A stretch of 64,000 bases of DNA from Tubulanus polymorphus (taxonomy: Eukaryota > Animalia > Nemertea). The stretch's first letter is position 1; each line of letters starts with the position of its first letter. The notes below the pieces were generated by a model that searched no databases, was not told where the DNA came from, and worked only from the letters and a program-made list of their open reading frames with translations. The translations under genes and the position numbers were made by a program. The stretch covers positions 3,162,001 through 3,226,000 of the forward strand of contig NC_134036.1 in assembly GCF_964204645.1 (NCBI RefSeq). Direction: 5' to 3'. This document shows positions 33,053-62,652 of the stretch, one piece after another.

Positions 33053-35498
33053 TTAGCCCAGAGTCTTCAATACCCCGCCGATAACTGGTAAATAATTCTC
33101 GTATTTTAACAGTCTTACGTTGTTCGGTCTCTGCTGGGTAAACTGAAAAAAGAAACATTCTCAAAAGGCAGGGGTCTCGGTAAAGAAATAGTGGCTAAGC
33201 GCAATATCGAGCCTAGTAAGTGTTTGGCTGAGTGGGACACGATTAAAAAACATTTATGCAATTTGAAATATCTTAGAATTCACACGCCCCCTCTGCTTAA
33301 TCTACCCCTGCGCAAACCCTCTGATTTTAAAAATGGGTCAATGATTCTTACCACACAACTGTAGGGCATACGATGTATATAGTCCACCAGTCGTTCATTG
33401 CCAGGAAATAGCATTCCGGTAAAATATGTTTTTGTGAGGTTGAATCGTTTTGTATGATGGTTCATCATCGTCATCATTGTCCGGTAGCTTTCGTTTGCTA
33501 AAGCGGCCATCAAATCATCGGGGTTCGGCTCCGTAATATCTAAATGAATTGATATACCAGTGTTAGATCGTCATATGTGCACTATTCGTTTATATATACG
33601 CGGACATGTTGCAAGGAAGTTAATGATGATAAACTGGTTTACTTGGGTTTATTTAGAAACATATCGCAGACTCTGTCTCCCTTACTCTGTAAAAATTGAG
33701 ATTGCAAAAATTGTACCCGAGTTTGTGTCAAATACTTAAGAGGTTGACCGATTAGAATATGTGATAAGGATAATATTTGATACCTTCTTTCTCCTAATCG
33801 ATGGGATCATTTTTTCAAACTGCAATAAGATTTGTTATCAGTTCATGGCTGCAACTTTTAACCTCAGCAGAAATGAGAAACAAGGTATCAATCTTTGCCT
33901 AAACTCTGAATCGTGGCTAGGAAAGTAAAATATAGGCCGCGTACCGTTTTGAATTAGTTTACCCATCGGGAAAACTTCCACGACAAACGGGTAAAATATG
34001 CTGATAGCTCGAGTGTCGACATCACCGTACGATTCAGGAATGGCTTCGGTTAATGTAGTAGAAATATTGGCCGGGTCTCCGTCTTTCGAAGCAGCAATAA
34101 TTTCATCTATAGTCTGTAGAATATCGGATACAAATATTGCAAGTATTACGCGTAGGAATAGAGTAAATGCTCTTTTCCAAGACACCCGAATGTCATGGTT
34201 GCTTTACATCGCAAAAGGTGTACCTTCTTACATCAGGACCTTAACACTATTAATTTAGAGTTGGTTAGGAAGTTCTCAGTACGACTTGAGTGAAGTGAAA
34301 TCATAGGGGTATGGGTTCTAAGGGTAAGGTTTAGATACAATACCTTGTATCCTGTTAAAGCTCTGCCCAATGAAGCCAAATAAACGCCGCCATATCCCAA
34401 CACCTTCTCCAAGAACTTACAGCTTCCATCTTCTTTGACCTGTAGGAAAACATCAATATTTGGAAAGTACACAATGTCATGGTCTCGTGTTTTTAAAAAT
34501 TTGCGAGTAAAACCTACTTTGTAGATTTCAAAAGAATCTCCCATACTACAGACGAGTGCAGGGAATAGGGGATCAGGCTGAGCGCTGGGGTCCTTTGGTG
34601 GCGCGTAACCGAACGCTCGTTTCAACAGAGCGGCAATGTCCGGATCGGTATAAGGCCGCATGGAGTCCGCCTCGTCCATCTTCGCCAACATATGATGTAC
34701 ACTTTTACCCAAACACTCCGATTTCTTCAACCGCACGAGCCTACAGTAATGATTTCAGATACAGTTTAAGTCATTTATAATGAATTTGGCGTTGAATGGT
34801 ATTTCCATCGAATTTAAGTTAGATTGAGTAAATTTGTTCTGAGTGCCGAGCGTGGCACTAAAAAAATGAACGCGTTATTACGACCTTGGAGTAACGTAAC
34901 ATGTGACAAAATGCCCTTATGATTACTGCACCGGGTATGATACAGAGTAGGGACAAAAATAGGGTACTTACTCGTCGGTATTGAACACGTTTTTAATTTT
35001 TTCCAACGTATCTTTCCTCAAACAGCCGCTACAGACGACGGTTACGTCAGTATCTTTCACAGCACATATCCTATCCTTGACCTCTTCGAGACCTGGGACG
35101 AGATTCGCGGCCGATATTTTTGCCAAGTTGATTTTTAAAACGTCGCCATTGATTTCATTTTCAGAAGCCTGTTGAGTTAATAAGCGGATTGGGTCAAATG
35201 TTGGGTAAGTGTTCTTGAAGTACAGTTCACTTCACTTAAAGTTGATAAAGTTGCCAGTGATTGATTCTAACCCAAAAGTCTCACAACAAATGCAACTTAC
35301 CGTAACGTACGCAACTGAAGATGCTAATTCACCTGAAGAAAAAGAGGTGATTAAGTCAAGACGATGCTGTAGAAATAAGTGTGACCCGAGTATTCTAAAC
35401 TTACCGACTTCTACGCACACTACGTGACCTGGTCTTTTGCATCCTGTCGCAGGGTAGGGAAACTCGTCTTCCTGCAGGAGTAGCACTTCCCCGGACAT
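33053..35498 (-). CDS. Divergent pantothenate kinase-like (type II/fumble fold) protein, 377 aa, probable pseudokinase
   Basis: Exons 35498-35405, 35332-35301, 35213-34972, 34740-34518, 34439-34344, 34113-33945, 33539-33352, 33142-33053 (1134 nt, open, all GT-AG). Segments are colinear with PanK motifs: VCVEVGGELAS~DIGGTLVK; VVCSGC~ATGGG; RLKKSECLGKS~KLDELDCLVKG; LFPALVCSMGDSFEIYKV~PLLVVNIGSGVSILAV; GYGGVYLASLGRALTG~SLGGGTFLGLCSLLTG; TIDEIIAASKDGD~SFEEALEMASKGD; DDLMAAL~EDLARAT; TYFTG~VVFVG; LLKYENYLPVIGGVL~FLEHEGYFGAVGALL. Minus-strand AATAAA at 32579-32584. Confidence 0.8.
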
Positions 35499-37819
35499 GT
35501 TATTGTTGGTTCGTTGATAATCTTAAAATCCAAAAATCAAACGTTTTGTCAATAAAGAAGTAGGGAAAATAACCTTAGATACAAAGTAGCTAAATAATTC
35601 GTGGAATAATGTAGGATCCAGTGGATGCTTTGAGCTCTAAAGCGACCCCCCAACCCCCCCCCCCCCCCCCCGGCTTCCCTTAAGAAATTCTCCTTGGGCC
35701 GGTTTTACAGACTGGGATTACCTTTAACCCGAGGGCTTACTTAATTCTTTTTCAATTGAGTTAGCCCCCGGGTTAAAGGTTATACCCGTCTATAAAACCG
35801 GACCCTTCGTATTATTCATTTTCAGTTTTTTCACACGCATCATTTCAAAATTCAAGATATTCATCAAGATTTTGAATATGTTAAATGATCAAGAGGTACC
35901 TAGAACGCTCAGAAAACATGAAACTGAGACTAAATTTTTCAGAATTTTCTTGGAAGTTCCTGGAGAGCATTCCCATTGTAAATCCTGGATTTGCCCCTGG
36001 AATTCTAGGCCTAGGTTATGCGAGTTTTGACCAGCAGTTTCACTATCCATAGTGTAGGCCTACCGGTAACTAACGTAATTGAGGCATGTGGTCCAGCAAC
36101 ACCCGCATTATTAGACCCATTAAGAAATTTTAACATACCTCTGAACGAGTGCTGGTACGCATATAAACGCCTATTATGGAGCCTAAGAAATGAAATACAT
36201 TTTTAGCTAGAACACACACCATAAGAAACCAGTTTGAATAGTTCTATATTAGATTATTGTAGTTACGGAACTGCGATATGAATAACTACGTGTGTACCGG
36301 TTATTTACTTTCTGTTCATGGGGTCAAAGGACACACATTTAAGGTCGATAGTACTAAGTAGTACTGACTGGTTGATTAAGTTTATTTGACATTAAGCAGA
36401 AGGGGAATGGTTCTTCTTATGGAAAAATGTCATGAAAAATTGATGAATAGGCCTAGAGGGAGAAAATGAAAGGAAATCTGGGGTTTTAACTGCTATTCCA
36501 GCGGCAGAAACTATCCACTTGCCAGCCCGATCTGCTTTTGTGGGACTCGTCGTTCGTGCATCGATTTTGAGGGGGCCACTTTTCAGGTTGCTAGTTTGCG
36601 GGTGTGTGTGACCTGGGCCAGACAGAAAATCATACTCGGTGATCTTATGCAATCGAATAATTAGGAAAATTCTACAAAAGATGCACTTTTGGATGTATGT
36701 CTCTAGTCGAAGCGCGCCTCAGCTCTACCGGCGTCAACTCCTTCCTATACACACCTGTGGGAGTATGTATACTGTCTTGTGGCGGCATCTAGGTCAGGTA
36801 TCGATTGTTCATGTAAACTGGCAGCCCTCCACATAAATACGTTGTCCCCGATTGTTTAGAATCCACGTTTTATTATTTATATTCACAAATAACTCAATAA
36901 ATGCTGCATTCTTTGATGTTCATCAGTATCGTTCACACATAAGTAAGTTTGCTCGATTTGTATATATATTTGTCGAATTCTTAGATAAATAGAGAATATT
37001 AAAAACTGACACACTGCGCACGTCTACTGCCTACTACTACACCTACACCTACATTCACCGACACTAGTGACTTGATAAGTGAGGTCATATACTGGTAAAC
37101 CTTAAACATATATGAAATTAGCAAAGATGTGTTGTGAAGAAGCATTAAATTTTAGCATGTGCATTATATTGTCAACAATGTTCTTATGGGTTTTGGAAAC
37201 TTCTGAAAAATGGGAATCATTTCCCAGGCCTTGGAAAACAGCTATGGAAATCATGTGTTATTCTCTATGGCAAAGATATGGTAAATTAGAAAACGGTCTC
37301 GAAATTTCCGCCCAATTTTCTGTCCTTTGATGGCAACCAGCAGAGGTGTCACTTTCCAAGTAAGATATGTTCATAGCCACTACAAATTTGAATCAATCTT
37401 TATGAAAACCCTCTGTCAATTCAATTTTAATGCCACAGATTTACTTAGAATAGGCATATGAAAAAAGTTGGCCAAAGTGTACTTATGGGGTATGGAAATT
37501 CATTATCTTCTGGTATTGAAAATGAACAAGGTTGGCCCTAAGAACCCTTGGTTACACTAATGCGTTGTGAGTGTGAGAGCCTAAACGGTTTTTAGAGTGA
37601 TTTCTAAATGTCTGCTGAGCATTGATAAAATGAATGATATGCTCGTGTAGGTAATAGTCATGTATGATATTAAACTTAATCGTGATTAATTGTTTTTTTT
37701 TTCTTTTCTTTCATTATAAAAGCTGCTTGGTTTTATTGTTTTGTAACGAGGTTTTTTCTATTTAATTCCCACCACCATCAGAGACACTGAACTGATTGAA
37801 AAACCTGATCAGTACTAAG

Positions 37820-38869
37820 CTACACTGGCAGTTGTGTTAAAGTTCGAAAAAACTGCTTATTTACGATACAATACAGAATGAAATTAACACACGAATTAAG
37901 ATCACTCGTAACGAATGATATGTCCATCGCTAATTCCCAAATAACCGCATTCGGCAACGCGTACGAACGCACTTTAGAAAACGTGGCAGGTAGTTCTAGA
38001 ACCAGGAAGGTTACACTCATCGATATTACCATACGAGTTGCTTTAGAATCACCTGTCAACAGTTTTTGTGAGGTTCCGCCTAATTGTTGGCGTTGTTTGA
38101 ACTTCACGTACAAGGTTACGATGAGGGCTGTATTTATCAAGAGTACCGCCCCGGAAGGAATTATCAACCTAAAAATCGGTCCTATCAGTTTATTACACAA
38201 TAGATATAATGTTTCGTATTTGTAAACAAGTCGAGTATTAGGTCCGTGACAGGGGTCAATGTATTCTTCTATTTTAAGGGTCAGGGGGAAATAAACGGGC
38301 CAAATAAAGAAAAAAGCGGTAGCCACGCCGATGATTCGGTTCATGCGCTTTTTCGTCCACCATTGACTCGCTTTTAACGGATATAAAACAGTCAGTAATC
38401 GTTCTATTTGTATCAGAACAGTCAACCAGTTGCGCTGATACATGAATCCAAAACGTATAATGTGAGTCCCGTACACAAACATTTTCGGGTAGATGTGGTA
38501 AGGATCGATAAAAACCTTATCACCGTAATTGATGTAGAAAATCGAATACCTCAAAGTGTCTGACAGAAAGTGACCGAACAGCATGCCGATGTCGGCCATT
38601 GCCAGATATTTTAACAAGTGTATTGAAGGATGTGAAGACTTGAGCTTGGTAAACACGACGATATTTAGAGTGTTCATCACCCAGCCCGCGAGCATAATCG
38701 GAGTTAGCACGTATAGGTTGATGAAGAAACGACCAGACCATTCAGCGTATTGCTGCGCGCAAGCTTCTTCGCGGGTTACGTTTGGTACAGCAGTCATTGC
38801 TGTTTGCGGTGTTGAGAAGTCATCGAAATTTGTGAAATCAAGCACATTGAACCACGAGTTTAACAGCAT
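37820..38869 (-). CDS. Intronless class A (rhodopsin-like) 7TM GPCR, FMRFamide/sex-peptide-receptor-like subgroup
   Basis: 349-aa ORF with seven hydrophobic segments: TM1 GWVMNTLNIVVF, TM2 LAMAD, TM3 IERLLTVLYPLKA, TM5 LIIP..LLINT, TM6 FLVLELP, TM7 NSCVNFILY, helix 8 NKQFFRTL. N-glycosylation sequon NVT in the N-terminus. Confidence 0.9.
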   Translation of the reverse strand: MLLNSWFNVLDFTNFDDFSTPQTAMTAVPNVTREEACAQQYAEWSGRFFINLYVLTPIMLAGWVMNTLNIVVFTKLKSSHPSIHLLKYLAMADIGMLFGHFLSDTLRYSIFYINYGDKVFIDPYHIYPKMFVYGTHIIRFGFMYQRNWLTVLIQIERLLTVLYPLKASQWWTKKRMNRIIGVATAFFFIWPVYFPLTLKIEEYIDPCHGPNTRLVYKYETLYLLCNKLIGPIFRLIIPSGAVLLINTALIVTLYVKFKQRQQLGGTSQKLLTGDSKATRMVISMSVTFLVLELPATFSKVRSYALPNAVIWELAMDISFVTSDLNSCVNFILYCIVNKQFFRTLTQLPV

Positions 38870-39800: not shown

Positions 39801-44642
<4,842 letters not shown>

Positions 44643-62544: not shown

Positions 62545-62652
62545 GGCCGGTTTTATAGACTGGTATAACCTTTAACCCGGGGGCTAACTCAATTGACAAT
62601 GAATTGAGTTAGCCCCCGGGTTAAAGGTTATACCAGTCTATAAAACCGGCCC
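62545..62652. mobile_element. Near-perfect palindromic MITE with CAG target duplication
   Basis: CAG|GGCCGGTTTTATAGACTGGTATAACCTTTAACCCGGGGGCTAACTCAATT-gacaatg-AATTGAGTTAGCCCCCGGGTTAAAGGTTATACCAGTCTATAAAACCGGCCC|CAG. Confidence 0.85.

Follow-up and report, generated by a model that had tools for sequence, protein, structure and literature searches.

The gene LOC141913991 and the fold of its product

The window analyzed in this work is a stretch of 64,000 nucleotides (C12:3162001-3226000) from the 268-Mb eukaryotic assembly of the palaeonemertean ribbon worm Tubulanus polymorphus (Nemertea). Its minus strand carries, at 35498..33053, the single-copy intact gene LOC141913991 (the window gene), whose product almost certainly belongs to the family of proteins with the fold of pantothenate kinase (PanK), the enzyme at the entry to coenzyme A synthesis. 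The coding model, derived from the sequence by splicing and redone by exact spliced matching, consists of eight exons coding for 362 amino acids, with no stop and no frameshift over the 362 codons, GT-AG borders in 7 of 7 introns, and a TAA stop codon at positions 33055-33053 (Table 1). The deduced protein, P0004, is identical letter for letter to RefSeq XP_074661335.1 ("uncharacterized protein LOC141913991") and was used as the reference sequence for database searches and folding. An earlier interpretation made without database searches, referred to below as the sequence-only reading, had placed an intact eight-exon frame at 33053-35498. The splice model and the RefSeq identity uphold this proposal and correct the length of the product from 377 to 362 amino acids.

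Comparison of the whole of P0004 with Pfam revealed a match to Fumble (PF03630) at 44.3 bits with an E value of 1.7e-11, the gathering cut-off of this family being 28.5 bits; the match pairs residues 113-358 with profile positions 90-333. Searching Pfam exon by exon did not afford a Fumble match for any single exon of the window gene, nor was the locus flagged when the genome was scanned with Fumble in six frames, indicating that the gene is far diverged. BLASTP aligned 346 amino acids of P0004 with P0001, a paralogue that matches Fumble end to end (133 bits), at 24% identity (E = 6e-29). The ESM Atlas model of P0004 (predicted template modeling score, pTM, of 0.79) superimposed on PANK4-type Fumble clusters with a TM score of 0.79 over residues 2-362, and the two nearest structural clusters were both of the PANK4 type. 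AlphaFold2 (AF2) models based on alignments of four and six sequences displayed mean predicted local distance difference test (pLDDT) values of 57 and 68, respectively, with values of 75 to 90 over most of the N-terminal lobe encoded by exon 3. With the first of these models as the query, the top 34 Foldseek matches were all type II PanKs. Superposition of the second model by VIA-align gave a Z score of 21.9 with yeast Cab1 (278 aligned residues, root mean square deviation of 4.3 Å, model residues 11-361), about 17.9 with PANK1 and PANK3, and about 17.5 with the Staphylococcus aureus PanK, versus 14.9 or less with other families of the ASKHA superfamily. The modeled structures confirmed the prediction that the whole chain of P0004 adopts the two-lobe type II PanK (Fumble/ASKHA) fold. 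The Fumble search by HMMER and the superposition on PANK3 had both been proposed in the sequence-only reading, whose description of the protein as colinear with the type II PanK core is borne out by the Fumble match, the alignment with P0001, and the superposition on Cab1.

A family of stand-alone PanK-like genes in T. polymorphus

Scans of the genome with Fumble, with exon 4 of the window gene, and with P0004, together with protein searches, revealed at least nine stand-alone PanK-like genes, including the window gene. The search for a paralogue expansion suggested by the sequence-only reading was thus productive, and its view of the window gene has to be divided: the gene is degenerate and stands alone as proposed, but it is not a lone copy of the true PanK, being one member of this family. 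Four genes are arranged in tandem on contig C9, and the three with a solved structure, P0002, P0005, and P0006, contain eight exons each. P0002 and P0003 are named "4'-phosphopantetheine phosphatase-like" by NCBI. The intronless P0001, whose siblings have eight exons, looks like a retrocopy that stayed intact. At the three remaining, divergent loci (on C6, on C11, and at a second site on C9, designated C9b), the order of the high-scoring segment pairs (HSPs) follows the exons of the family. Exon 4 of the window gene, compared with its own genome, gave weak matches, and only to other Fumble-like loci. The window gene is not linked to its paralogues and is located on another contig.

Gene structure and sequence both place P0004 in this family. 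Exon lengths were 94/32/197/223/96/169/188/90 nt for the window gene versus 106/53/167/247/93/169/188/96 nt for P0002, and the 169-nt and 188-nt exons are identical in length in the window gene, P0002, and P0005. Comparison of exon 1 lengths with the sequences indicates that intron 1 interrupts the phosphate-1 loop at the same point in the window gene and in P0002, and the N terminus encoded by exon 1 aligns with the N termini of the paralogues in the family alignment. Compared with the canonical PanK gene, the exon boundaries seen are different. Relative to canonical PanKs, P0004 also carries the indels of the family, namely, an insertion before the FG motif and a deletion in the N-terminal lobe, as well as the family-specific PYTD, FPAL, LTG, and PFVxE columns. 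The members are proteins of about 360 to 370 amino acids devoid of DUF89. Among the genes of this worm-specific PanK-like family, the window gene is, as judged by sequence, the one that has diverged furthest.

The residue at the position of Arg207 is Ile or Met in the six aligned members, Met in the four tandem genes of C9, and apparently Tyr or Met at the C6, C11, and C9b loci, for which the HSPs are rough. Replacement of Arg207 is common to the whole family, window gene included. The Asp-Glu pair is kept in all of the other members (read from the alignment of six proteins and, on rough HSPs, from C6, C11, and C9b), and DxGGS is kept wherever the N terminus is readable, i.e., in the aligned members except for P0003, which has a short N terminus, and in C11. 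The aligned paralogues also keep S/TGxG. Paralogues scored 122 to 149 bits on PanK models versus 31 to 44 bits for P0004. Pairwise ratios of nonsynonymous to synonymous substitution rates (dN/dS) among P0002, P0005, and P0006 were about 0.11 to 0.21, values that are rough, as dS is close to saturation. By their sequences, the paralogues resemble kinases whose substrate pocket has been rebuilt, and the window gene is the only member of the family in which the ATP loops and the Asp-Glu pair are missing as well.

The canonical PanK of T. polymorphus is encoded at C2:34920-37367, with intact MDVGGT, ATGGGA, YDELD, NIGSGVS, YRRVSGTSLGGG, and ASSFG motifs, and it is this gene that serves coenzyme A (CoA) synthesis in the worm. 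P0004 is 17% identical to it. Searching the whole assembly for PF01937 (DUF89) revealed a sole match at C1:8862036-8863378, which is of the ARMT1 type (252 bits with human ARMT1, 6umq). No Fumble exons were detected near this gene, and its ARMT1-type assignment led us to reject it as a candidate for a split-off PANK4 phosphatase. A PANK4-type fusion of Fumble and DUF89 was not detected in the assembly in this search, which gives a lower bound rather than proof of absence; T. polymorphus may lack PANK4 as such. The PanK-like family probably arose within the PANK4 lineage, an origin that we consider as a lead. It is suggested by the NCBI names of P0002 and P0003, by the PANK4-type structural clusters nearest to P0004, and by several motifs of the family that seem closer to those of PANK4 than to those of PANK1 to PANK3. 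The absence of a phosphatase domain from the window gene, noted in the sequence-only reading, was verified, since the stop codon follows the Fumble domain and PF01937 matches only on C1.

P0004 and its nearest paralogues share 24 to 28% identity. An LG+G4 tree was built with the canonical PanK as the root; basal support was weak (38 to 65). In this tree, the terminal branch of P0004 reached 2.16 substitutions per site, compared to 0.49 to 0.96 for the paralogues from the shared node, which corresponds to an estimated rate of evolution two to four times faster than that of the paralogues. Of the 111 columns invariant across four paralogues, 50 are retained in P0004 and 61 are lost; retention was 4/15 in active-site motif columns versus 46/96 elsewhere. 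In simulations of neutral substitution on the coding sequence (CDS), which ignore indels, only 0.5% of the frames were still open at 70% identity and none of 1,000 at 50%. Since neutral drift closes frames long before 24 to 28% identity is attained, nearly all of the divergence must have built up while selection kept the frame open and spliceable, as the sequence-only reading had argued from the intact frame, and drift cannot account for an open frame at such divergence. The GC content is 46% in the CDS and 37% in the introns. Between the window gene and its paralogues, the proportion of nonsynonymous differences (pN = 0.52) is lower than that of synonymous differences (pS = 0.76).

Active-site residues and predicted dimer

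Residues were aligned by anchoring P0004 on the canonical PanK of T. polymorphus itself, as well as on the PANK1, PANK3, and Cab1 chains (Table 1). The roles of the catalytic Glu138, of Asp137, Ser195, and Arg207, and of the Asp137-Tyr258' and Glu138-Tyr254' contacts have been described previously (PMC8366970). The anchored family alignment displayed all of the SGCL, KKSECL, SMGDSFE, and VFPMG replacements and the Phe at the Arg207 position that had been deduced in the sequence-only reading; the phosphate-1 loop, which had been given as EVGGE, proved to be EVGEL, the junction of exons 1 and 2 yielding a single Gly. The accompanying picture of lost catalysis is supported, with the revision that the loss of Arg207 is family-wide; special to the window gene is the further loss of both phosphate loops and of the Asp-Glu pair. 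The remodeled cleft gained the charged residues E33, K113, K114, D176, and E179. P0004 scored 31.5 bits on the PanK equivalog model NCBIfam TIGR00555, for which the cut-off is 247.6 bits.

Because both phosphate loops, the Asp137-Glu138 pair, the residues of the NIGSGVS strand, the GTS/GGG segment, and Arg207 are lost, P0004 should be unable to phosphorylate pantothenate. These replacements make it very probable that the protein is not a pantothenate kinase and, with less assurance, argue for its not being a kinase at all, a conclusion to which we would give good odds. Most likely, judging from the same motifs, P0004 neither binds nor uses ATP.

Modeling of P0004 as a homodimer afforded an ipSAE interface score of 0.69, compared to 0.33 for the best control. 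This value passes a mark that was reached by 21/30 proteins whose solved structures are pairs of one chain and by 0/23 proteins solved as single chains; for eukaryotic proteins, these ratios were 17/29 and 0/30, respectively. The homodimer runs agreed in at least 92% of the contacts, with a partner pLDDT of at least 76. The predicted interface comprises residues 201-210, 260-269, and 280-302, in addition to residues 33-34, 91, 93, and 176-177; the three segments follow the GGG motif and surround the loop equivalent to ASSFG. In these models, which support rather than demonstrate binding, the twofold dimer of PanKs is predicted to be kept in P0004.

Table 1. Exons of LOC141913991, positions in P0004 equivalent to PanK active-site residues, and loci of the PanK-like paralogues
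Feature	Location	Strand	Description
Exon 1	35405..35498	-	94 nt; ATG 35498-35496; N terminus and first half of degenerate phosphate-1 loop (..VEVG)
Exon 2	35301..35332	-	32 nt; finishes the loop with G32-E33-L34, where kinases have G-G-T/S
Exon 3	34972..35168	-	197 nt; remainder of N-terminal ASKHA lobe; includes S89-G-C-L92
Exon 4	34518..34740	-	223 nt; K113-K114; family-specific ML..M.E....PYTD; SMGDSFE
Exon 5	34344..34439	-	96 nt; F191; K-V-L; start of helix 200-211 (predicted dimer interface)
Exon 6	33945..34113	-	169 nt, length as in P0002 and P0005; Y243 and family-specific PFVVEVFPMG segment
Exon 7	33352..33539	-	188 nt, length as in P0002 and P0005; long helix 277-302 and kept adenosine-motif Gly312
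Exon 8	33053..33142	-	90 nt; C-terminal strand and helix; TAA 33055-33053; no phosphatase domain after
DxGGT (phosphate-1)	P0004 30-34		E30-V-G32-E33-L34 (EVGEL)
TGGG (phosphate-2)	P0004 89-92		S89-G90-C91-L92
Asp137-Glu138	P0004 113-114		K113-K114 (context KKSECL)
NIGSGVS	P0004 173-179		SMGDSFE (S173, G175, D176, S177, E179)
Ser195 (pantothenate contact)	P0004 179		E179
Arg207 (pantothenate contact)	P0004 191		F191
GTS	P0004 194-196		K194-V195-L196
Tyr254	P0004 239		I239
Tyr258	P0004 243		Y243, kept
Adenosine-motif Gly	P0004 312		G312, kept
ASSFG			VFPMG region
P0002, P0003, P0005, P0006	C9:14590179-14610268	two per strand	Tandem PanK-like genes
P0001 (XP_074646750.1)	C3:5980853-5981956	+	Intronless; 365 aa; Fumble 133 bits; DxGGS and Asp-Glu kept
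PanK-like locus C6	C6:4729400-4730870		Asp-Glu kept
PanK-like locus C11	C11:10621300-10625300		Asp-Glu kept
PanK-like locus C9b	C9:14270560-14272790 (14.27 Mb)		Asp-Glu kept

Inspection of the gene model revealed that intron 4 (34440-34517, 78 nt) is in frame and stop-free, exon 4, intron 4, and exon 5 forming a single open reading frame (ORF) of 167 amino acids; retention of this intron would add 26 residues and would not truncate the protein. An extra exon at about 33791-33826 was considered and rejected, as it broke the frame.

Nothing functionally linked to the window gene was seen near it in the window. An inverted repeat resembling a miniature inverted-repeat transposable element (MITE) is located at 35696-35804, about 200 bp upstream of the start codon, with 51-nt arms that are 84% complementary and a 7-nt loop; it is adjoined by a run of C residues (ca. 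35647-35672), and a second similar copy is found at 62549-62647, near the end of the window. An intronless ORF of 349 amino acids (37820-38869, minus strand), 2.3 kb upstream of the PanK-like gene, matches seven-transmembrane G-protein-coupled receptors of the rhodopsin family and of the Srw type. A multiexon kelch-repeat gene (40507-44151, plus strand) displays Kelch_4 and KLHDC2-type matches and encodes an acidic, low-complexity C-terminal part.

Candidate roles of a PanK scaffold stripped of its active site

The sequence-only reading had suggested acyl-CoA/CoA sensing, heterodimeric regulation of the true PanK, or a new substrate as candidate roles. Several PanK homologues offer points of comparison. 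Canonical type II PanKs (human PANK1 to PANK3, yeast Cab1, and the C2 gene of the worm) share with P0004 the two-lobe ASKHA fold, with which it is colinear, and a PanK-like dimer, predicted in its case; every motif that defines their activity is changed in P0004. The kinase-like domain of PANK4 (4'-phosphopantetheine phosphatase) is likewise a Fumble fold with inactivating changes, which the sequence-only reading located at Glu138 and Arg207; evolutionary mutations inactivated this domain in amniotes (PMC9352595). In PANK4, the C-terminal DUF89 phosphatase does the known work, whereas nothing follows the Fumble domain in the window gene. The phosphate loops, destroyed in P0004, are present in PANK4. 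PanK2 of apicomplexans is also a stand-alone type II homologue; its nucleotide motifs deviate, active-site residues are absent, and it is kept because it is paired with another PanK in a PanK1/PanK2(/14-3-3) heteromer (PMC8366970). However, apicomplexan PanK2 is essential for genuine PanK activity and complements PanK1 residue by residue, whereas T. polymorphus has a complete canonical PanK, and degeneration is far more complete in P0004. Reuse of a stand-alone PanK homologue as a noncatalytic regulator, as proposed here for P0004, has a parallel in CoaX of Mycobacterium tuberculosis, a pseudokinase of the type III PanKs described as a pantothenate-binding regulator of depupylation (bioRxiv 10.1101/2024.03.29.587195). 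CoaX is bacterial, belongs to another PanK type, and is said to respond still to pantothenate, whereas all pantothenate contacts are lost in P0004.

We favor the explanation that LOC141913991 is an intact, stand-alone gene for a catalytically dead protein of the PanK fold, probably a noncatalytic dimer, and assign it a probability of roughly 0.6. In this explanation, Arg207 is replaced in all members of the PanK-like family, and the member located in the window has lost the phosphate loops and the catalytic pair in addition. The fold and the open frame have been kept, the twofold dimer is predicted to be kept, and the dimer would bind some ligand or partner within the remodeled charged cleft or near it. 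The analysis demonstrates the gene structure, the RefSeq identity, the family membership, the fold, the residue losses, the accelerated branch, and the improbability of neutral drift, whereas loss of ATP binding, dimerization, and a noncatalytic role are what we infer for P0004, the last because the fold and the open frame are kept and the dimer is predicted to be kept. That P0004 acts specifically as a homodimeric binding or regulatory protein is a tentative proposal, for which we see slightly less than an even chance.

Several observations weigh against this explanation. The pass of the dimer model may reflect the memory of the model for solved PanK dimers, and interface positions are not better conserved with the paralogues than the remaining positions (P = 0.38). 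Confidence in the AF2 models was moderate (pLDDT of 57 and 68), and residues 199-269, which include much of the predicted interface, were poor in the monomer. The preferential loss of active-site columns rests on small numbers (4/15 versus 46/96), and loss of ATP binding is deduced from motifs, Gly312 of the adenosine motif being still present. Saturation of dS relative to the paralogues renders dN/dS unusable for the window gene. No orthologue was found in other species by HMMER against 1.84 billion representatives or by the word-index search, and the protein cluster of P0004 consists of the genome-derived record only. With exon 4, intron 4, and exon 5 as the query, HMMER against these representatives returned only P0004 itself, suggesting that no relative exceeds about 35 to 40% identity in this stretch, which does not disprove the existence of an orthologue. 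Word-index searches with P0001, P0002, and an alignment returned T. polymorphus proteins only; the search with the alignment was flooded by chance candidates and missed even P0002 and P0003, so that it says little.

Among the alternatives, P0004 could be the dead subunit of a heterodimer, modulating or completing the interface site of a competent paralogue or of the canonical PanK. The active sites of type II PanKs are built from both protomers (PMC8366970), and the heteromer of apicomplexan PanK1 and PanK2 is obligate and contains a single complete site (PMC8366970 and bioRxiv 10.64898/2026.01.22.701186). At least eight candidate partners with DxGGS and Asp-Glu intact are encoded in the genome, the PanK-type interface is predicted to be kept, and so is Y243, the equivalent of the Tyr258' that stabilizes the site of the partner. 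In contrast, the equivalent of Tyr254' is lost, conservation with the paralogues is no higher at the interface than elsewhere, identity to the canonical PanK is low, no paralogue resides on the same contig, and the homodimer model already scores well. We consider a heterodimeric role unlikely. Still less probable, in our view, is that P0004 is an enzyme with a rebuilt active site, acting on a new substrate or by a chemistry that dispenses with the ASKHA phosphate loops; we regard this as the most doubtful of the alternatives. The maintained frame, the sister genes that resemble kinases with a rebuilt substrate pocket, and the charged rather than only hydrophobic nature of the new cleft residues would be consistent with such an enzyme, but both phosphate loops were lost together with the GTS segment and the catalytic base, and we know of no ASKHA kinase that works without them. 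The low TIGR00555 score also argues against this possibility, as does a branch two to four times longer than those of the paralogues, which fits a release from catalytic constraint.

The window gene could also be a relic with little or no function, either a fast-evolving duplicate freed from constraint only recently or an annotated model that is hardly expressed, with a frame open by luck; the gene may have died very recently. This account draws on the failure of the HMMER and word-index searches to turn up an orthologue, on the longest branch in the family, and on the loss of 61 of the 111 columns invariant in paralogues. It has to contend with the seven regular introns and the 362 codons devoid of stops and frameshifts, in spite of the closure of 99.5% of simulated frames by drift to 70% identity, with the coding-type GC excess of the CDS over the introns, and with a sequence that still folds well enough to match PanK end to end. 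On balance, a relic appears improbable, slightly more so than a heterodimer subunit.

Returning to the noncatalytic dimer, a more specific and distinctly speculative version of this explanation, which we rate a shade below the heterodimer, is that P0004 is a cytosolic ligand sensor or carrier with a charge-rich cleft for a small molecule, either acyl-CoA-like or specific to the lineage, the PanK fold having been freed from CoA metabolism and expanded into a multigene family. If true, no earlier case of an animal pseudo-PanK that stands alone and has its own function would be known, and P0004 would be evidence that the kinase-like domain of the PANK4 type has a role independent of the DUF89 phosphatase. 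Why many organisms retain seemingly inactive PanK homologues is an open question (PMC8366970), as is the function of the pseudokinase domain of PANK4. The value of the window gene is comparative and biochemical, and it does not yet suggest a new class of mechanism. The genome of T. polymorphus offers a natural series comprising a normal PanK, about eight proteins with the catalytic machinery but not the pantothenate pocket, and one protein that is stripped yet intact. A comparison of ligands and partners across this series could reveal the use to which the PanK scaffold is put in the absence of kinase activity.

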